Shown here: positions 6,001-30,036 of the stretch, in pieces
Position numbering within the stretch: the stretch's first letter is position 1
Layout of the letters: every line of letters starts with the position of its first letter
Assembly (NCBI RefSeq): GCF_006345805.1
Contig: NW_021834352.1
Coordinates: forward strand, 1-50,062
Direction of reading: 5' to 3'
DNA length: 50,062 bases
Origin: Octopus sinensis
Lineage: Eukaryota
Program-made: the position numbers and the translations under genes
Notes under the pieces: model-generated
Told to the model about the DNA's origin: nothing
The model's database searches: none
What the model saw: only the letters and a program-made list of their open reading frames with translations

Positions 6001-8089
6001 ATCTTTCCTGTTGTCTTGATTTTGTTGTAGCGTCAACAACTTTTCCATATATTGTAGGTGTAGATGTGGCTGTAGTGTTGTCTGCAATATTGGTTTATTG
6101 CAGAAGCTATTGTGCAGGGTAGTACAACCACAGGTACTTTGACTTTCCGAACTTGACCACCACTCATATGAGCTCCTTGTCCTGCATGTAAATTTGTTAG
6201 GGATTTTGTGGAAGTTATTTGATGTCAGTGACATTGCAACTTTCACCCTGACTACTGACAACATTTCGTTCAGGATCGATTTCATGGCGTGTATATCAAC
6301 ATATATCACTACAGATATAATTAAATTGAAATAATTTCTTCTGCGGATCATATGTATCAACACAAGTTTTCAAATTCACTTTGCTATGAAATATTGCTAC
6401 AAGAGATCCAAATAACCCTTATCTCTTTACAGGCATATTTCAGAAATACTTCCGCATCCGCTAGTGCCGGATATTCAAGTTAACAGTTTTGGTAACACAT
6501 CTAGAAGTTACATTTTATTTTTCGCTTTTAGTGTGTGATATCCGCTGTTTCACGAGAGGGTGAAATAAGGAAATTAAGTTTGACGAGGCATTTTCTGAAA
6601 TATCTCAGTCGTGACTCAATCCCCTCACATTTCGTTGGGTGAATTTTAGCGAAATATTTTATTTGTTTATTTGTTAATTTAACCGATATATTTGTTGCTG
6701 GTGGTACTGGCAGTGGTAGTGGCAGTGCTGGAGTTGATAATTGTCGCGGTGTTAGTAGTGTTAGTGGTTGTCTTGATGGTAGTGCTGATCATCGCTTCAT
6801 TGATTCTTTTGATAAAAGTCTTTTCGGTTTTTGTTTGTTTTGATATTTGTTGCTCTGTGTTGACTCTCCTTTGTTGCTGTTGGTGGTGCCTTCGCTGCTT
6901 TCTTTGTAAAAAAATCTTCATTTGCATTTCTTCTAGAAATTTGTTGTTGTTGCTGTCTTTGCTGTCGTTATTTGTAGAGGCTTCAAGAAGCTCTTTGTTA
7001 AATTTTCCATTTCCTGTTTATCTTTAAATTAGTTCCAACAGAAATTTACGATGTCGTTCGTTTTCAAAGCGGTGACATAACCTGTCCTGTTCACACTTTC
7101 TTTCAAAGCGATCTGGTATGCACTTCAATCTCTTCGACCTTTATTTCTCTCTTTCTATCCTTCTTTCTCTTGCACTTTCTATTCTCTCTCTCTCTTTGTT
7201 CTTCTGTGTCTCTGTTTCTTTCTCTTTCCCTTTCTCTCTTTCTCCCTCTCTCTCTCTCTCATGAAAAGCTTCACTGTGTCGCGTCCTCATGGATGGCGAT
7301 AATAATTTTCATAACAAAAGCTGACTTAAATCGAGTTTTCTCAAAATGTACGAAAAAGTACGAAAACAAAATTAGCAGTCAACTTTAAATATTTCATGTT
7401 CAACGAAGATATACATTTCAAAAATAATAGTTTAAAATGAGAAAGCTGCCATAAATCCGATTTACAAAATATGACGTGAGAAATAAGACATAATTAAATG
7501 AGAGTAAGGAAAAAGTAACTGGCAATGAAATAGTCAATTATTTATTCTAACAGTTATTCTCTAACATTGATACGGAGTTAGGTTATAAGAATAAATTGAA
7601 AGAATTTAGTAATTTTGGTGGGCGGGTTATCATTTGAATATTACTAAAAAAATGTAAAAACTAGGCTATAATATAAATAAGATCATTCGTTTTAGTCGAA
7701 AATAATTTTTTTTGTTAATAGAAAATTTATGATGAAATCCAATCGTTTATCAAATTTGGTACATTGACTGAGTTGTTCAAAATGGTGGTTATTGAAGATT
7801 CTTACAGAAATTCAGTGAAATAAAGAGACGACGTGATAAAATCATCGTAATTAACATATGAAATGAAGAATAATATCAGTAGTATAAAAAAAGCAAATTG
7901 ATGCATTAATATCGATGATTAAGGCAAGTGCAAAGACAAGTGAAATATTAATGATGAAAAACATATGTGAAGGTAAATTCTACGAAGATACTGCGAAAAC
8001 GAAAACCGAAATTTGAAAATATTACATCAGCATAAAAAGACAATTGTTACGAAAAAGTAACTTTTCAGAATTTAGTAGTGCATAATTTA

Positions 8090-8457
8090 GTAGCAGTAGT
8101 AGTTGTTGTATTGGTGGTGGTGATGGTGGTGGTGGATGTGGTGTTGCTGTTGGTAGTGGTAGTGGTAGTAGTATTAGTAGTAGTAGTAGTGGTGTGGTAG
8201 TAGTGATAGTGGTGATGGTGGTGGTGGTGGAGATGTTGATGATGAGGTTGGTGTTGGTGTTAGTGGTTGTGGTTGTGATGGTGGTGGTAGTAGTAGTAAT
8301 ATCATTATTATTATTAGTAGTAGTGGTGGTGGTGGTGGTGGTGGTAGTCATAGACATGGTAACCTCGAGAATTTTGCAATGTGGTTGTAGTGGCGACGTC
8401 GAGAGAACAGTAGTAACAACAACAGCAGCGGCAGCTATTGTAGTAGTAGTAGTAGTG

Positions 8458-8544
<87 letters not shown>

Positions 8545-8550
8545 ACAACT
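8090..8550. repeat. (GTA)/(GTG)/(GCA)n compound trinucleotide array
   Basis: Direct reading. Confidence 0.9.
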
Positions 8551-9038
8551 GGAGCGATAGACGTAGTGTCCTGGAGAAGGTTGTGATGTAGCAGATGTTA
8601 AGTGAAACATGATATGTTAGAAAAGTAAATAAAAAAGAAAGATATCCAAAATTTAAAATGAACTTAAGACAAAAAGATTGGCGTGATGACGGAGGTGCAC
8701 ACACAACAGGAAGCCAAAATGAGATGAGACTCTAGATTATTTATTTTCAAATGACTTTCAATGCTTAAAAATTATCCGCATAGTACTGTTGCATTAGACA
8801 TTATTGTTAAAAGGTATAAAACAAAACCAATAAAAGACAATACGAAAACCAAGAAAAAAACAACAAAATACAACGAAGAAATGTAAAAAATAGAGTATAG
8901 TGTATGGAAACATAAAAAATAGAAGCGAAAATTTGAAAAATAAATGAGAGAATATATAAGAATTATTTGAAAAGATGAGGTGGAAAAAACAAAAATAAAC
9001 AAAACATAAAGTAAACTTGGCCTGACTAGATGTACACG

Positions 9039-9251: not shown

Positions 9252-9851
9252 GTATGTATATATCACGAAGCCACGCATTTATATAGACACACCTATATAA
9301 AGCGTACGATAAGCATTTAAGTCATTTGCGTGTTTGTGACTATGAATATTTCAATGTTAAAGATTTTGCATAAAAATGTATATCGTAGATGTGTTTGTTT
9401 ATAGCTGTGTGTGTATATATCCGAACTTTTTAATATAAATGGAAAATATCTGAAAGTAAATATGAAACACTAAACAAGAAAAAAAATGTTAGTTAAAAAA
9501 AAGCAAATTATTTTCTTACTGAAATTATTGGGAATAATTCAATGAAGAAATATTCAATCGGTGCCAAGGGCTAAGTACACAATCTACATAGAATGATCTC
9601 TCACCCACCCTGACACTGACGCACATACACACAAGCAAAAACAAGTGATACTGCGTGTAAGAGTGTGTCCACCATTTAAGCATATACTAAATCATGTTGC
9701 TAAATATATACGTGCGTGTGTGTGTGCGTACACGCGTATGTATGAATGTAAATACGTACACACACACATACATATATAATTATATTTATATGCATATATA
9801 TGTATATGTTCGTATATATGTATGTAAATATATAAATATGTATATATATAC

Positions 9852-14850: not shown

Positions 14851-17010
14851 ACCACACGAAAGTCGGTATTTACATACAAACCGAACAACAACCAATGCAC
14901 ACCAAATAAAAGACACCAGGACCTCATACTTACACAAGTCAATCTAACAAAAGAAAACTACGGTACAACTGGAACACAAACCTCCATAATAGAAAACTCG
15001 CTTTGTTGAATATGATAAAATATTCCAAGAAAGCAGATATCTACGAGGGATGAATGATCTCAACAACAATTATTCTCCCACGGAAATTCCAAATCAAAAC
15101 AATATCTAATGAACCCAACAGACGGAGCACTATTAGGGAAAGGTTAGCACAATTCCATCTAAAATCAGAGATCGAACTACCAAACTTTAGAGCCTCCACT
15201 AATGAAGAAAAATATAAAAACATCGACGAGGAGATTCACAGGGACATAAGCAAACAAACCGAGGCACAACTCTTCGAAAACACCATAAATCTTTGGAAAA
15301 AACTCTGCGAAAACGAATTATGAAATTCTCTTCTACGCTAGGAAATAATCAATGGTTTCTTCCAAAGATATGAATCAGTGAAGATAATTCTATTCTACAG
15401 AAAATGATAAATTATAAACAACAAACAGAAATTGAACAACGCACAAATCTCCCCCAATTTTAACCACTTTTCAACCACAACACTCCTCATTATCTGTCTT
15501 ACACCATAAACAGAAATCACCTACTACCTCCATTTGTTAATCACCCAAAACTAAACAAGCTGACAGCCAACTCATTTATGAAATAGATTACATCAAATCT
15601 AAAGAACACCCATACACCAACATCATCCCAATATCAGGCATAACCATCTCATGGCAATGCAAAACAACACTAGGAAAGCAAGCACGCCACATAGCTGGCG
15701 CTACTACCCCATGACCCAAAATTTCCGGTCTCCACCGAACACAAGAACAGCACAAAATAACACTTGATCAAGAAACACCCCGCATACAAATAATTCCAAA
15801 TAAAAGTATACCTCACACAGAAATGTTACACACATCACTAACCAAAACTACCATAGGTACCGGCACACACATAACCTGAAGCAAGAACACCATTCCCCCG
15901 GACCAATCCCATACAACCTCACAGACATCTCATGCAAACGAACCTGCAACCCACATTTTTAGCTCCAGATCAGAGACACCAGAATACAGGTTGGAACCTG
16001 GTGATCAGGTTAAACCGAAGATAATTAACCTCTCAACTAAACCTCTTCCAATCACAAAAGTAAACATCTTCTCAAAAGACAAAACAGGCAATCGTTTGAA
16101 ATTAAAAAGGCTATTGAACAGCGTCAACCCAAACATACAGTTCTCAATGGAGTGCAACCAAAAGGAGCGCCCATTCTTAGATATACTAATTGAAAAAACC
16201 TAAAATTCGAAACGGACATATCTTATAAATCTACAGACGCCAAACATTATCTACAATTTAATTCATGCCACCCAAAACACAAAATAAACATCCCCTTCAA
16301 CCTTGCAAGAAGTATATTCAAAATAGTGTCAGAAAAATACCAGAGACTTTAGACTGCAATGGCTCACAGTTAAACTCATAGAAGATGGAATCAGACTTGC
16401 AATGCAAATCGACATAGAAAACTTTAGAAAACACAGCTTCCCCGAAAATATTGATGTACATATCCACATACAACCCAATAAACAAAGAAGCCTTTATCAT
16501 CATAAACCGAAATTTACCAATGCTACATAATGACCCACATGAAATCATTAAAATCCACAAACAACTGAAATCACTAAAAATGACAATCACAAGGGCACAA
16601 TTACTTTCTTAAATAACGGATGGAAAAGGGAAACAACCTTCTAGATAGCGCTAATCTTCTTGATGGATCAGAATAGATTTTCAAATAGGGACAATTCAAA
16701 ATCAAATCTGACTTTACTTCTGCTTCAGAAAACCTGATTAATGTTATAAGATGCTCGAGTCCCACCAAAACTAAATGGTATCCACGGGGTTATCACTCAG
16801 ACGCAGATGCACTCTGCACCGACAGCAGATTGCATTCCTAAGTTACGGAATGATACACTTTAGTGAAATTATTGAGAATGCGCAAAGATAAGGCTAATAC
16901 AATTTGTAATCTTTCTATTCTATCAATGTGCCATTGGAACACCGACACAAGTTAGATTAAATAAGGAAACCAACTTCATTGGAAAATATAAGCCAAAACC
17001 TAACGATTTC
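14851..17010 (+). mobile_element. Decayed Penelope-like element with RT core deleted; RT thumb and GIY-YIG endonuclease relics remain
   Basis: KIINLSTKPL (pre-RT motif); LLNSVNPNIQFSME..PFLDILI; TDISYKSTDAKHYLQFNSCHPKH.INIPFNLARSI; FKIKSDFTSASENLINVIRC; SLRRRCTLHRQQI; RLNKETNFIGKYKP; many stops and frameshifts; starts right after (TA)n. Confidence 0.85.
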
Positions 17011-24892: not shown

Positions 24893-25417
24893 GGAGCATT
24901 CGGATCGGCTTTCGAACATGATCTAGCATCGAAAATTTCAAATTGACACAAAAGTGACGTCTATCTATTATAGGAGAACAAACATAAATTCTTGTTCGAT
25001 TGCCGGCTGCTAAAGATCGTAAACTTATTGATTGGTCTAGAACACATTAAATGAATTATGTATTTCATTTGCCGATAATCGATGGCCTCACATTAATTAA
25101 TACTCTACGCTCAGCTCCGTTCTAAATAATAGCCGATAGTATAGATTATCGATAACGTTATTTTTTCTTCTTTGTGTGTTTTATTAATCTACTTCCGACG
25201 ATTTTATGCAGTCAATGTGATAAAATTTTTGCTGTTTTCTATGTCAGTTAATGACGTCAGTGCATATAGGTATAGAAATTGCAAAACACATACGTAGATG
25301 AAAAACAGATAAATATAAAAAAAAAAGACGACTAGAAACACGCCGAAGAACACAAACTCGCAAACACGCACCTGCATGTATGAATGTATTTTAATATAAT
25401 CATATATATATATATGA

Positions 25418-25687
25418 TTGTCTCCCCTTCGTAAATGTATATAAGGACACATGGAAAAAATGTGTCAAAGCCATCAGGAGGCGTTCGATGCTTCCTAGGG
25501 CTATACAGCGGTGGTGTACCCTCTACTGTCACGTTCTTGTTAGATTGACAGTATACAACCATTCTATCGCCCCACCACCGTACATGTCTCTACGAGAGAT
25601 TTAGAAATTCAATATTTCTTATTTTGATAATCAGTGAATAGACTTCATTGAATTATAGATATATACAATTGCGAAGTCGAGACAAAG
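25418..25687 (+). mobile_element. Left part of a hammerhead-bearing retrozyme-like repeat
   Basis: 25418-25564 is a direct repeat of 29306-29452; gagacaaa at 25679-25686 is complementary to tttgtctc at 29305-29312; preceded by (TA)n. Confidence 0.75.
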
Positions 25688-27459
25688 ATCACCGCCCCCC
25701 CCTTTTTTTTTTTGGTTATTGTGGTGTGTTTGTTTCGAGTGCGTCATTGTGAAGAGATTGTGAGTTCGAGTTCGTTGGAGGACGTTGAAAAGTTTTTTGT
25801 TGGAGATTTTTGAAAATGCAAGAGCAGACTTATGCGAGAGCGGCAGGCAGAGGCCTAGTTGCCAGTGAACTGGAAATGGAAGAAGTGGTGGTCGAACAGA
25901 AAACTCTAGAGAAGTATTTCGACAGTTTGAAGAGGGAGGGTGACTGCGTGAGAGTCACACCCGTCGAGGAGGAAGAAAGCAACGTGGAGAAGCGTATGAT
26001 AACGTACAGGACATGGTGTGTGGCGTCGAAAAAAGTTGAAGTAGCAGAAACGGAAGAAGTAGAAAAGTGTCTGAAGGAAATTGAGTGTGAACCCACATTT
26101 TTCAAGAGGAAGGAAATATGCCACAGTGGTGGTATATTTTAAAACAGAAAATGAAGCAAAAAAGAATGCAACAAGAATTTTGAAAACGGATAAGTGGACT
26201 TTACTACCAAGTTACTGCGGAAGGAGGGCAGTGAGGATGAGAATTAGCAGAATTTCGCCCGAATTTAATATGGAGAGGTTGTTGGCGGCAGTGGTTTTCA
26301 ACTGCAAGGATAGTGTGGAGGTGTTGAAGGTGGAGAAGTCAACAGAGGTTAAGTGGTGGGGATATACGGTGCAGGTTCTGGCACACATAACCGTGCGAGA
26401 CCTGTACAACATCCCGGAGGAGTTGGTCTACCCTGATGAGACACGGCTTAGAGTCGTGGTAGAAGGAAGACCCCCAGTCTGTGCTATAATTGTAAATCAA
26501 GGGGCCACATGAAGGATGTGTGCCCGCTGGAAAAAACGAAAGCACCGGAGGCTGTAATAGAGGAGTGTAAAGATGCGTGTGTGGAGGAGGGAGAAGTGCA
26601 GGAGGAAACAAAAAAAACAGCTAAATGAGGATACGGAAGAAGAACGAGCAAGTGCAGAGGAGGAAAGAACAGAAGATAGGAAGAGACAAGGGTGGAATCA
26701 CCACCGAAAGTTCTAAAAAAGAAAAAAATCAAAAGCAAGATAACAGAAGAAAAGAAGAGAGAACATGCAAAGAGCAGGAAGTAAAAGAAGAGCGAGAGAG
26801 CAGCCAAGGACAGAGTTTGAACAAGAATGGGAGACAAGTGAAAGAGCAGTTGGAAGCGTGTAAAAAGGAAGAAGGTCTGCAGGAAAAAACCTGAAAGCAG
26901 TTGTGATGTATATCAAGAATACAGAAGTGGAAAAGAGACTTGCAGGTAGGAAAGCGTTGGTCAGGGTGAAGTTGAACCCAAAACTGTATGGTGACGATGT
27001 AAAAGGCGCAGTTATAGAAAAAGAAACATTCACAAAATTAAAAAATATATTTAATGCTATTTATATAGCGCATTATGTACGGTATGACAATTTACCAAAT
27101 GTAATAGACCAAATGGACTTAATAGAATATATGACGGACGAACGTCCAATAGAACTGAATTGTTAAAATTGTAACATTGTGAATTGTAAAAAGTAAAGTT
27201 GTATTTTGAACAGGAATATATGTAATGTTAAAATGTAAAATTGTAAGTTGTAAAATTATTGTATTTTGAACTGGAATATATGTAACTGTAAAATGTAAAA
27301 TTGTAATTTAAACGGAACTGCGAGTTGGGGGTTCGTAAGCCGTTCCATCTCATTACATATAAATTCATCTTTACTTCATAATTTATTTTTACTTTATGTA
27401 CCCCATGTCCCGTCTTGTAATGTCCCCCTCTTCGTGGCCTTTGTGGGTAATAAAGAATC
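25688..27459 (+). mobile_element. ORF1-only non-autonomous retroposon, unit 1 (L1/Tx1 ORF1-like)
   Basis: Starts atcacc-C run-T run; 5'UTR; one broken ORF; 3'UTR with tgtaaaat repeats and a hairpin; aataaa at 27449-27454; no RT or endonuclease. Confidence 0.8.
25816..27166 (+). pseudogene. Frameshifted ORF1/Gag-like nucleic-acid-binding protein, ~450 aa reconstructed
   Basis: MQEQTYARAAG start; putative RRM-like region (YATVVVYF); RVVVEGRPPVC followed by a CCHC knuckle (frameshifted here, intact in unit 2); E/K-rich region; C-terminal domain ending ERPIELNC*. Confidence 0.75.
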
Positions 27460-29211
27460 ATCACCACCCCCTTTTTTTTTTGGTTATTGTGGTGTGTTTG
27501 TTTCGAGTGTGTCATTGTGAAGAGGTTGTGAGTTCGAGTTCGTTGGAGGACGTTGAAAGGTTTTTTGTTGGAGATTTTTGAAAATGCAAGAGCAGACTTA
27601 TGCGAGAGCAGCAGGCAGAGGCCTAGTTGCCAGTGAATTGGAAATGGAGGAAGTGGTGGTCGAACAGAAGACTCTGGATAAGTATTTCGACAGTTTGAAG
27701 AGGGAGGGTGACTGCGTGAGAGTCACACCGTCCGAGGAGGAAGAAAGCAACGTGGAGAAGCGTATGATAACGTACAGGACATGGTGTGTGGCGTCGAAAA
27801 AAGTTGAAGTAGCAGAAACGGAAGAAGGAGAAAAGTGTCTGAAGGAAATTGAGGGTGAACCCACATTTTTCAAAAGAGGAAGGAAATATGCCACAGTGGT
27901 GGTTATTTTTAAACAGAAAATGAAGCAAAAAAGAATGCAACAAGATTTTGAAAACGGATAAGTGGACTTTACTACCAAGTTACTGCGGAAGGAGGGCAGT
28001 GAGGATGAGAATTAGCAGAATTTCGCCCGAATTTAATATGGAGAGGTTGTTGGCGGCAGTGGTTTTCAACTGCAAGGATAGTGTGGAGGTGTTGAAGGTG
28101 GAGAAATCAACAGAGGTTAAGTGGTGGGGGGATATACGGTGCAGGTTCTGGCACACATAACCGTGCGAGACCTGTACAACATCCCGGAGGAGTTGGTCTA
28201 CCCTGATGAGACACGGCTTAGAGTCGTGGTAGAGGGAAGACCCCCAGTCTGCTATAATTGTAAATCAAGGGGCCACATGAAGGATGTGTGCCCGCTGGAG
28301 AAGACGAAGGCACCGAAGGCTGTAATAGAGGAGTGTAAAGATGCGTGTGTGGAGGAGGGAGAAGTGCAGGAGGAAGCGAAAGCAGAGGAGGCACAAACGG
28401 AGGAGCAGCTAAATGAGGATACGGAAGAAGAACGAGCAAGTGCAGAGGAGGAAAGAACAGAAGATAGGAAGAGAACAAGGTGGAATCACCACCGAAAGTT
28501 CTAAAAAAGAAAAAAATCAAAAGCAAGATAACAGAAGAAAGAGAGAGAGAACACGCAAAGAACAGGAAGTAAAAGAGAAGGCGAGAGAGCAGCCAAGGAC
28601 AGAGTTTGAACAAGAATGGGAGACAAGAGTGAAAGAGCAGCTGAAGCGTGTAAAAAGGGAAGAAGGCCTGCAGGAAAAAACCTGAAAGCAGTTGTGATGT
28701 ATATCAAGAATACAGAAGTGGAAAAGAGACTTGCAGGTAGGAAAGCGGTTGGTCAGGTGAAGTTGAACCCAGAACTGTATGGTGACGATGTAAAAGGCGC
28801 AGTATAGAAAAAGAAACATTCACAAAATTAAAAAAGATTTTAATGCTATTTATATAGCGCATTATGTACGGTATGACAATTTACCAAATGTAATAGACCA
28901 AATGGACTTAATAGAATATATGACGGACGAACGTCCAATATAAAAGAATTAGATATATGTAATGTTAAAAAGTAAAATTGTTAATTGTAAAATTGTAAAA
29001 TGTAAAATTGTATTTTGAACTGGAATATATGTAATTGTGAAATGTACAATTGTATTTTAAACGGAACTGCGAGTTGGGGGTTCGTAAGCCGTTCCATCTC
29101 ATTATATATAATTCATCTTATTCATATTTTATTTTTACTTTATGTACCCCACGTCCCGTCTTGTAATGTCCCGTCTGAATTTGGCCATCGTGCCCATAAT
29201 AAAGATATAAT
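27460..29211 (+). mobile_element. ORF1-only non-autonomous retroposon, unit 2
   Basis: Tandem copy of 25688-27459 (period ~1770 bp, high identity); aataaa at 29198-29203; followed by atcacc. Confidence 0.8.
27584..28943 (+). pseudogene. Frameshifted ORF1/Gag-like protein with intact CCHC zinc knuckle
   Basis: CYNCKSRGHMKDVC = C-x2-C-x4-H-x4-C in track ORF 28121-28504; frameshifts mostly at different positions from unit 1. Confidence 0.8.
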
Positions 29212-29452
29212 ATCACCAGCTGACCGGTGTCTGCTACTCTAGGCCGATGAAGGACAATGATCCTGAAACACGTGTCCTTAGATGCAGCTTCGGCAGCCGG
29301 GGTGTTTGTCTCCCCTTCGTAAATGTATATAAGGACTCAGTGAAAAAATGTATCAAAGCCATCAGGAGGCGTTCGATGCTTCCTAGGGCTATACAGCGGT
29401 GGTGTACCCCCTACTGTCACGTTCTTGTTAGATTGACAGTATACAACCATTC
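29212..29452 (+). mobile_element. Right part of the retrozyme-like repeat, carrying the hammerhead
   Basis: Contains HHR 29231-29287; 29306-29452 repeats 25418-25564; ends directly at (TA)n. Confidence 0.8.
29231..29287 (+). ncRNA. Minimal type I hammerhead ribozyme, core variant CCGAUGA
   Basis: Stem I tctagg/cttaga plus ctgc/gcag; core 29244-29250; stem II agga/tcct with 6-nt loop; GAAA 29265-29268; stem III C-acgt-G (palindrome CACGTG); GUC cleavage after 29276. Confidence 0.8.
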
Positions 29453-29539
29453 ATATATATATATATATATATATATGAAGGTGCCTAGCTCGGAGAGTCT
29501 AAGCATACCAAGCCAAATGAGTTTAAAGCCAATCGGGAA

Positions 29540-29625: not shown

Positions 29626-29932
29626 TCAACACCAATATAAGCACGATCACTCGCCCGCGCACGAACATACACAGAAGCACACACACAAAGACGGCACACA
29701 CACGTACACACACACACTCACATGTATGTTAAATATCGCCTCGACATTTCTGTGGCTAGAAACTCCTTAATCTAATAATCATTATCCGGCTATCCATCTA
29801 TCTATATTTCAGAGTTTATGAATACATGTATATGTATGTGTCAATGTATATAGATACATATATAATTTCGAACAATGGAGATGGTAATTTCATTTTAATA
29901 GATGGTTTTTAATTATTTCATCACTCCCCTTT

Positions 29933-30036
29933 ATTATAACTGATCATGCATAGGATTGTCAGTGTATTCGGAATGTACTGAATTATAACTGATCATGCAT
30001 AGGATTGTCAGTGTATTCGGAATGTACTGAATTATA
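29933..30036. repeat. Perfect 49-bp tandem duplication
   Basis: attataactgatcatgcataggattgtcagtgtattcggaatgtactga x2 plus attata. Confidence 0.97.

Follow-up and report, generated by a model that had tools for sequence, protein, structure and literature searches.

A fixed junction in two octopus genomes suggests LINE insertion into a structured, hammerhead-type repeat

Contig NW_021834352.1 of the Octopus sinensis assembly (GCF_006345805.1) carries, in the 50,062-nt stretch analysed here (hereafter the window, on whose scale all block coordinates are given), a block in which two units derived from a long interspersed nuclear element (LINE) stand inside a short repeat that folds strongly and bears a hammerhead-like motif. 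The block reads (TA)n, X, Y, U1, U2, H, X', (TA)n, where X and Y make up the structured domain, U1 and U2 are the LINE-derived units, H is the hammerhead arm and X' is the 3' copy of X. Together with an equivalent junction of a distantly related LINE in Octopus bimaculoides, the arrangement points to one mobile element that targets another. Two further loci served for comparison, one in Octopus bimaculoides (CM046605.1; hereafter L001) and one on a Logan contig (hereafter L002). The window has a G+C content of 34%, and 81 runs of at least five TA units make up 3.4% of its bases; long (GT)n and (CA)n tracts are present as well.

Anatomy of the block

The left limit of the block is a (TA)6 tract at 25403-25414, the remnant of the microsatellite into which the whole block was inserted, and the right limit is a second remnant, (TA)n, at 29453-29476. 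Between them all parts lie on the forward strand. X (25415-25564) comprises the first 150 nt of the structured domain and is a direct repeat of 29303-29452, whereas Y (25565-25687) is the remainder of that domain; the 3' terminus of Y, GAGACAAAG, is paired with the beginning of X and is directly followed by the LINE-derived units. U1 (25688-27459; 1772 nt) begins ATCACC-G-C8-T11 and ends AATAAAGAATC, and U2 (27460-29211; 1752 nt) begins ATCACC-A-C5-T10 and ends AATAAAGATATAAT. H (29212-29302) opens with a third ATCACC (29212-29217), its start at the 3' junction reading ATCACCAGCTG, and is followed by X' (29303-29452), a partial second repeat unit that reaches the microsatellite.

The initial annotation of this DNA reported ATCACC at all three junctions, and the hexamer indeed begins at 25688, 27460 and 29212. 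It also lies inside each unit (26697 and 28485) and occurs 12 times on the forward strand of the window. The homology between the tandem units continues beyond the last unit for 6-7 nt of H, within the hammerhead arm (chance level ~4^-6), and this extent of homology matters more than the mere presence of the hexamer. Excision of 25688-29211 leaves 273 + 241 = 514 nt, made up of a single 364-nt unit (H-X-Y) and a further 150 nt, bounded by (TA)6 and (TA)n. An interrupted partial tandem is indicated by X and X', which form a 150-nt direct repeat, 96% identical, with six differences in 150 positions (divergence 4.0 +/- 1.6%).

U1 and U2 stand head-to-tail and align over their full length, with 3.8-5.0% substitutions and 18 gaps; they are thus two old copies and no artefact of assembly. 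The divergence of X from X' is close to that of U1 from U2, which is compatible with nesting soon after the repeat had been inserted. A self-BLAST of the block gave no further copies of U, X, Y or H in the window.

The hammerhead arm and the folding of the repeat

H contains a type I hammerhead-like motif at 29231-29287 on the forward strand. The 5' strand of helix I (29231-29243) is followed by the core CCGATGA (29244-29250), helix II (29251-29264) and GAAA (29265-29268); helix III, ACACGTGT, occupies 29268-29275, C17 lies at 29276 and the 3' strand of helix I at 29277-29287, so that cleavage is predicted after C17, at 29276/29277. Helix I would have 6 bp (UCUAGG/CUUAGA), lengthened by CUGC/GCAG, helix II 4 bp (AGGA/UCCU), and helix III 2-3 bp formed by the palindrome ACACGUGU; at the base of the arm, the CACC of the third ATCACC pairs with GGTG at 29301-29304. 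As predicted, this is the canonical metazoan type I architecture, in which a 6-bp helix I, a 4-bp helix II and a short palindromic helix III are found and which acts as a dimer (PMC4209133).

The hammerhead ribozyme that the initial annotation described is present in its architecture, but not in its core or its score. The core reads CCGAUGA and not CUGAUGA, the C for U at position 4 (29245) being its sole departure. The Rfam model Hammerhead_1 aligns from end to end (1-45 of 45) at 29238-29282; in a search of 136 nt it scored 13.5 bits (E = 1.4), well below the gathering cut-off of 34 bits for this family (RF00163); no Rfam family reached its gathering score in the window or in L001, and a 5-kb search gave no Hammerhead_1 match at E <= 10. 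Against these shortcomings stands the chance level: a site of equal quality occurred in none of 100 dinucleotide shuffles of the window, scanned with a descriptor that leaves core position 4 free. L001 retains the 3' half of the motif, GAAAC-AYGU-C, together with the 3' strand of helix I. We conclude that H is probably a decayed copy of a genuine hammerhead-type motif whose cleavage is predicted. A single change at position 4 would fall within what a decay of 2-4% leads one to expect, and the copy in the window is probably inactive, because of its core C4 and its score below the cut-off.

The repeat is highly self-paired, as is expected of retrozyme RNA. X-Y alone (25415-25687) folds at -94.1 kcal/mol (z = -8.0) with a 24-bp closing stem, and the reconstructed monomer, whose folding had been proposed as a check, reaches -118.9 kcal/mol with z = -6.1 as a circle. 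An RNAalifold comparison of X-Y from the window and from L001 yielded 79 consensus pairs, 7 of them compensatory, which indicates that the RNA structure of X-Y is conserved. It had further been claimed that joining the two flanks restores a long helix closing the ribozyme, and that this speaks for flanks that were once contiguous. This argument is invalid, as every helix named in its favour sits inside one flank and is independent of the join: the helix TTTGTCTC/GAGACAAA links the start of X to the end of Y, both within the left flank, and CACC/GGTG, GCTG/CAGC, CCGG and CTGC/GCAG are all located within 29212-29304. The case for an interrupted repeat is carried by the X/X' direct repeat and not by the helix.

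The interrupting units and their LINE relatives

Each U unit consists of a leader of ~125 nt, one long frame broken by frameshifts, and a 3' untranslated region (UTR) of ~290 nt ending AATAAAGA. The remnants of open reading frame 1 (ORF1) lie on the forward strand at 25816-27166 in U1 (frames 1, 2, 1) and at 27584-28943 in U2 (frames 2, 3, 2). A CCHC knuckle is intact in U2 at 28250-28291, where zf-CCHC (22.3 bits) is the only Pfam domain found, and is broken in U1 by a 2-nt insertion at ~26480. A structure model of the ORF1 product is poor (pLDDT 55), so that the two units before the knuckle that resemble RNA recognition motifs (RRMs) are to be taken as a hint. No ORF2 was found in the window. 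The 3' UTRs contain short tandem repeats of the TGTAAAATTGTA type at 27164-27310 and 28953-29054, in copy numbers that differ between U1 and U2, and a conserved hairpin (AACGGAAC...GTTCC) follows at 27311-27346 and 29060-29095; it may be a 3' recognition structure of the element.

A word-indexed protein search with the pieced-together U translation gave one close relative, an O. bimaculoides protein with 55% identity. This kind of search is lossy and returned only P0001, P0081 and P0015; a look-up of P0001 gave no genomic locus. A HMMER search with the O. bimaculoides protein produced 346 relatives, annotated merely as 'CCHC-type domain-containing' or 'uncharacterized', and thereby defines a new ORF1 family for octopus genomics. 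Ten relatives were looked up, of which eight bear species names, and all of these are Octopus. Fusions of ORF1 to a reverse transcriptase (RT) were absent among the long relatives scanned, and metagenome scans with ORF1 peptides and with the conserved repeat pattern gave no match.

The genomic context of these relatives identifies the units. L001 holds two members of the ORF1 family, each followed by an ORF2 with the Pfam domains Exo_endo_phos (3.3e-13), RVT_1 (2.2e-11) and zf-RVT (8.7e-11), for which the closest solved structures are the L1 endonuclease (L1 EN) and human L1 ORF2p, and in L002 an ORF1 precedes the first part of an ORF2 with an endonuclease of the apurinic/apyrimidinic (APE) type. 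The L001 relatives thus have the combination of APE, RT and C-terminal zinc-binding domains that marks ORF2 of the L1 group, whereas the window units are without ORF2; their 1.75 kb hold a 5' UTR, ORF1 and a 3' end, as in the HAL1 ('half-L1') elements of Bao and Jurka (2010, cited in PMC4494074), which are ORF1-only, non-autonomous derivatives of L1. The sequences therefore identify U as a HAL1-like, ORF1-only and non-autonomous derivative of an L1-group LINE, since its ORF1 relatives precede an ORF2 in L001 and L002 and the window has none, and the retroposons of the initial annotation, there described as ORF1-only, are what they had been taken for. The L1-like affinity of the LINE lineage is apparent from its domains; membership of the Tx1 clade is a candidate label.

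This context also bears on a quite different explanation, in which X and X' are the 150-bp long terminal repeats (LTRs) of a TR-GAG element and enclose a region coding for a CCHC protein. The direct terminal repeats begin with TG, as such an explanation would have it, and the internal ORF has its knuckle, but X ends in TTC and not in CA, the sequences beside X and X' read as neither a primer-binding site nor a polypurine tract, and the interior consists of two tandem units with boundaries of their own. The homology of the ORF to LINE ORF1s upstream of APE/RT ORF2s in L001 and L002 effectively refutes it, and we regard it as hardly credible.

The junction in Octopus bimaculoides and its bearing on the explanation

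In L001 a homologue of the repeat starts at (TA)5. An inverted partial copy occupies 9434-9627 by BLAST, or to 9378 by eye (66% identity, E 1e-16), and covers positions ~292 to 47 of the monomer; a direct copy follows at 9628-9760 by BLAST, or to 9763 by eye, covering positions 225-361 (68% identity, E 3e-12). The direct copy stops at the end of Y (...CTAGACAGGC, position 9763), and the homology between the two LINEs of this locus, LINE-A and LINE-B, opens at 9764, the base right after it. The junction between the Y end and a LINE 5' end, as aligned here, recurs in O. bimaculoides, and both loci hold two successive LINE units. ORF1 of LINE-A and that of LINE-B are 50% identical. An identical 19-mer, TTTTTCAAACAGCTGGTCG, stands at both LINE starts (9764-9782 and 15393-15411), either as a conserved 5' terminus or as sequence derived from the target, and the next 170 aligned leader bases agree at 69%.

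ORF1 of LINE-A has only 25% identity with ORF1 of U, against the 66-68% found for X-Y. As the repeat is far less diverged than the LINEs, the two junctions would have been made independently, which points to a site preference: on the alignments, the LINEs of the two genomes, which belong to one lineage but are very distant from each other, start at corresponding nucleotides of homologous repeats. Two of the three 5' ends that are not preceded by another copy abut the Y end (U1 of the window and LINE-A of L001, but not LINE-B). We therefore favour, with a probability of roughly 60%, an explanation in which L1/Tx1-like LINEs of a target-specific lineage have inserted repeatedly at a single site of a repeat of the retrozyme or Penelope-like element (PLE) type.

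Several observations weigh against this explanation. Only one independent second junction is available, that of LINE-A; for comparison, target specificity in the Tx1 clade has been accepted where a given flank accompanies >20% of copies (PMC4494074). LINE-B is preceded by AT-rich sequence that resembles neither the repeat nor a demonstrable LINE 3' end, so that either site specificity in this family is not strict or the 3' UTR of LINE-A consists of the 368 nt behind its ORF2. The site-specific nesting proposed in the initial annotation accordingly gains an equivalent junction in LINE-A and finds no recognisable adjoining repeat in LINE-B. An uninterrupted Y-H junction was not seen in the loci examined, and in L001 the assembly has N gaps where the 3' flank of the array should be. 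The L002 leader has marginal similarity to X (10 of 500 shuffles) and none to Y, and a strict scan of L001 and L002 gave no canonical CUGANGA hammerhead, to which the sub-threshold Rfam score in the window has to be added. The likeness of the L001 19-mer to the start of H was not significant on shuffling, and we therefore claim for L001 just an identical 19-mer and no duplicated target sandwiched between the copies. Finally, the similar ages of X/X' and U1/U2 are equally compatible with the block having moved in its entirety.

By-eye similarities of L002 to the Y end, and of the U 3' UTR to L001 15216-15392 and 15025-15100, failed shuffling. At 136-165 L002 has a core-like heptamer, CCTGATGA, between a leader hairpin and the LINE 5' UTR, with neither GAAA nor helices, which is probably due to chance.

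Mobilisation as one unit is the substance of a composite element, in which X-Y would be the leader or promoter of the LINE, H-X' the next unit or a terminal repeat, and the whole block would have moved into (TA)n; in a variant the element is Y-U-U-H-X with a partial X upstream, as in a Penelope-like pseudo-LTR, and the hammerhead trims the transcript. Y stands directly before a LINE 5' UTR in two species, X and X' are terminal direct repeats that resemble pseudo-LTRs, and their divergence equals that of U1 and U2. The (TA)n at both limits is the preferred target of several PLE clades, and the inverted partial copy upstream in L001 is a PLE-like feature (PMC8557442). However, U2 and LINE-B start at the same unit boundary with no X-Y in front, so that X-Y is not part of the repeated LINE unit, and X-Y is 66-68% identical between the loci while the LINE 5' UTR is barely alignable and ORF1 agrees at 25% of amino acids, a contrast not expected under joint inheritance, though weakened by the structural constraint on X-Y. 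In addition, the ORF2 is of the APE/L1 type and not of the GIY-YIG type of PLEs, and H-X' followed by (TA)n would have to be a 3'-truncated unit if X-Y were a leader. A hammerhead that supplies the RNA 3' end of such an element is the less parsimonious assumption, and we consider a composite origin unlikely, while ranking it first among the alternatives.

The same junction bears on two less probable explanations. In the first, a single reverse transcription event copied retrozyme RNA, jumped to U RNAs and returned through ATCACC microhomology, with no recognition of a target site. Head-to-tail LINE copies without intervening target at both loci would follow from it; non-LTR enzymes, as discussed in PMC4494074, have been documented to jump end-to-end between templates and to make 5' additions, and other invertebrates contain retrozyme RNA in great abundance (PMC7229834). 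Such a chimera requires three jumps at the same hexamer, its junction differs from the hammerhead cleavage site at 29276/29277, which is the expected end of a linear retrozyme RNA, and it leaves unexplained why a 25%-identical LINE family has its junction at the same nucleotide in another species; it is, in our judgement, improbable. In the second, somewhat less probable still, a LINE fragment happened to insert into a structured repeat of no special kind, unequal exchange later duplicated the unit, and the resemblance to a hammerhead is fortuitous. The 13.5 bits and non-consensus core, the commonness of ATCACC (12 per strand in the window) and the restriction to two loci would suit such a coincidence. 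The absence of the motif from 100 shuffles, the conservation of the hammerhead 3' half and of the structured domain across species with compensatory changes, and the use of the same junction nucleotide in L001 would not, and 6 bp of homology would hardly suffice for unequal exchange.

Proposed origin of the block

Under the favoured explanation of repeated insertion at one site, a non-coding unit of ~364 nt, resembling a retrozyme or a PLE terminal repeat, would have inserted into (TA)n as a partial tandem of 1.4 units, X-Y-H-X', a layout that would arise if a circular or multimeric RNA were reverse transcribed. Octopus LINE machinery of the L1/Tx1 type, acting in trans, would then have nicked the repeat after the Y end (...GAGACAAAG^ATCACC...), and the 1.75-kb ORF1-only U would have been inserted there with duplication of ATCACC. 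A second U copy may have entered the same site, which is possible because the site survives insertion, or the reverse transcriptase may have switched to another U RNA; both routes would lead to ATCACC-U1-ATCACC-U2-ATCACC. In Tx1-type elements, tandem copies that sandwich a target-site duplication have been read as sequential insertions, and families of this clade target other transposons and satellites (PMC4494074). All parts decayed after the nesting, both ORF1s being frameshifted and the hammerhead core carrying C4, and the copies in the window are all dead. Mobilisation in trans, target specificity and the order in which the events took place are inferred.

The claims of the initial annotation have held for the layout of the block and have failed for the helix and for a consensus hammerhead core. 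LINE target specificity and ORF1-only derivatives are known; a hammerhead repeat as the target would be new, and the literature searched contained no description of LINEs that target hammerhead repeats. If this explanation is correct, it places a parasite upon a parasite within the class of animal retroelements that is least understood, provides a natural marker for accessible retrozyme DNA and an APE endonuclease with a defined, structured and assayable target, and offers a concrete test of ribozyme-bearing repeats as platforms for the transcription and processing of other elements. That the LINE copies nested at the Y/H boundary of retrozyme arrays actually live off the retrozyme, through its promoter and through excision by flanking hammerheads, is a doubtful extension for which we find no direct support here; it would yield LINE or ORF1-only RNAs whose leader is the structured X-Y, whose ends are made by the ribozyme and which may also be circular.

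Penelope-like elements and other neighbouring features

PLE sequences lie near the repeat in both loci. The window has a decayed PLE remnant at 15054-16760 on the forward strand, with short ORFs containing RT-like motifs (...RPFLDILIEKT, 15991-16203) and, at 16653-16757, a GIY-YIG-region match to the L001 PLE (58% over 36 aa). In L001 a PLE ORF, with RT and GIY-YIG domains that are both weak in Pfam, occupies 6807-8696 on the forward strand and the element extends up to ~9366; it adjoins, on the upstream side, the (TA)5 from which the inverted repeat copy starts, so that two LINEs, a hammerhead-type repeat and a PLE have one microsatellite site in common. No similarity was found between the X/Y/H unit and the L001 PLE or the window remnant, a weak test in which just two PLE copies were compared.

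The inverted and direct arms of the repeat in L001 (9378-9763) overlap by ~68 nt (positions 225-292) and form a long hairpin with z = -9.4. Their layout resembles the inverted, 5'-truncated copies of PLE insertions (PMC8557442). Twin priming of a leader-bearing LINE RNA was considered for the inversion and rejected, as it would require one RNA spanning two LINEs.

Downstream of the block by 480 nt, the window contains a perfect tandem duplication of 49 bp x 2 (29933-30030). An Rfam match to SCARNA7 at 29671-29812 on the reverse strand (27 bits against a cut-off of 65) is driven by a (GT)n tract and is spurious.

Comparison with known systems

Target-specific LINEs are known for rRNA genes, small nuclear RNA (snRNA) genes, microsatellites and a few DNA transposons. 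Those of the Tx1 clade, which include Tx1L in Tx1D, Tx1-Mar in Mariner-N4_AMi and Keno in U2 snRNA genes (PMC4494074), offer the closest parallel. The octopus LINEs share with them an ORF2 with APE, RT and a C-terminal zinc finger, an ORF1 with a CCHC knuckle and head-to-tail copies separated by duplicated target, and would also share insertion at a fixed point of another repeat and non-autonomous partners mobilised in trans. They differ in their target, a putatively hammerhead-bearing repeat of the retrozyme or PLE type, and in that their specificity rests on two loci. Like HAL1, U keeps the 5' UTR, ORF1 and 3' end of a LINE without its ORF2, so that the ORF2 protein of a partner would be needed, as for HAL1. 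Unlike HAL1, it is molluscan and represented by two decayed copies only, and its ORF1 bears a knuckle, possibly behind two RRM-like folds, in place of the mammalian arrangement of coiled coil, RRM and C-terminal domain (CTD).

With the non-LTR retrozymes of animals and the pseudo-LTRs of PLEs the octopus repeat shares a non-coding unit in the range of 150-450 nt and a tandem or partial tandem arrangement (PMC7229834, PMC4209133, PMC8557442, bioRxiv 10.64898/2026.07.22.740005). The predicted helices of H (6 bp, 4 bp and short palindromic) and the highly self-complementary RNA are those of animal retrozymes, and the position in (TA)n, with PLE remnants nearby in both loci, is that of PLEs. Unlike animal retrozymes, the octopus copy has C4, a sub-threshold Rfam score, 1.4 units and one hammerhead-like motif, and unlike PLE pseudo-LTR repeats it has no demonstrated homology to a PLE terminus.

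A further parallel concerns R2 and other LINEs, which reportedly reside in a transcribed repeat and have their RNA freed by a self-cleaving ribozyme. As in R2, the octopus LINE stands at one site of a structured, multicopy repeat with a putative ribozyme near the junction. The R2 ribozyme, however, resembles that of hepatitis delta virus (HDV), is owned by the LINE and lies at its 5' end, whereas the octopus hammerhead, known from sequence alone, is part of the host repeat and closely follows the insertion on its downstream side. If the LINE did live off the retrozyme, the doubtful extension named above, it would be a hammerhead counterpart of R2 in ribosomal DNA, with its ribozyme borrowed from the host element.

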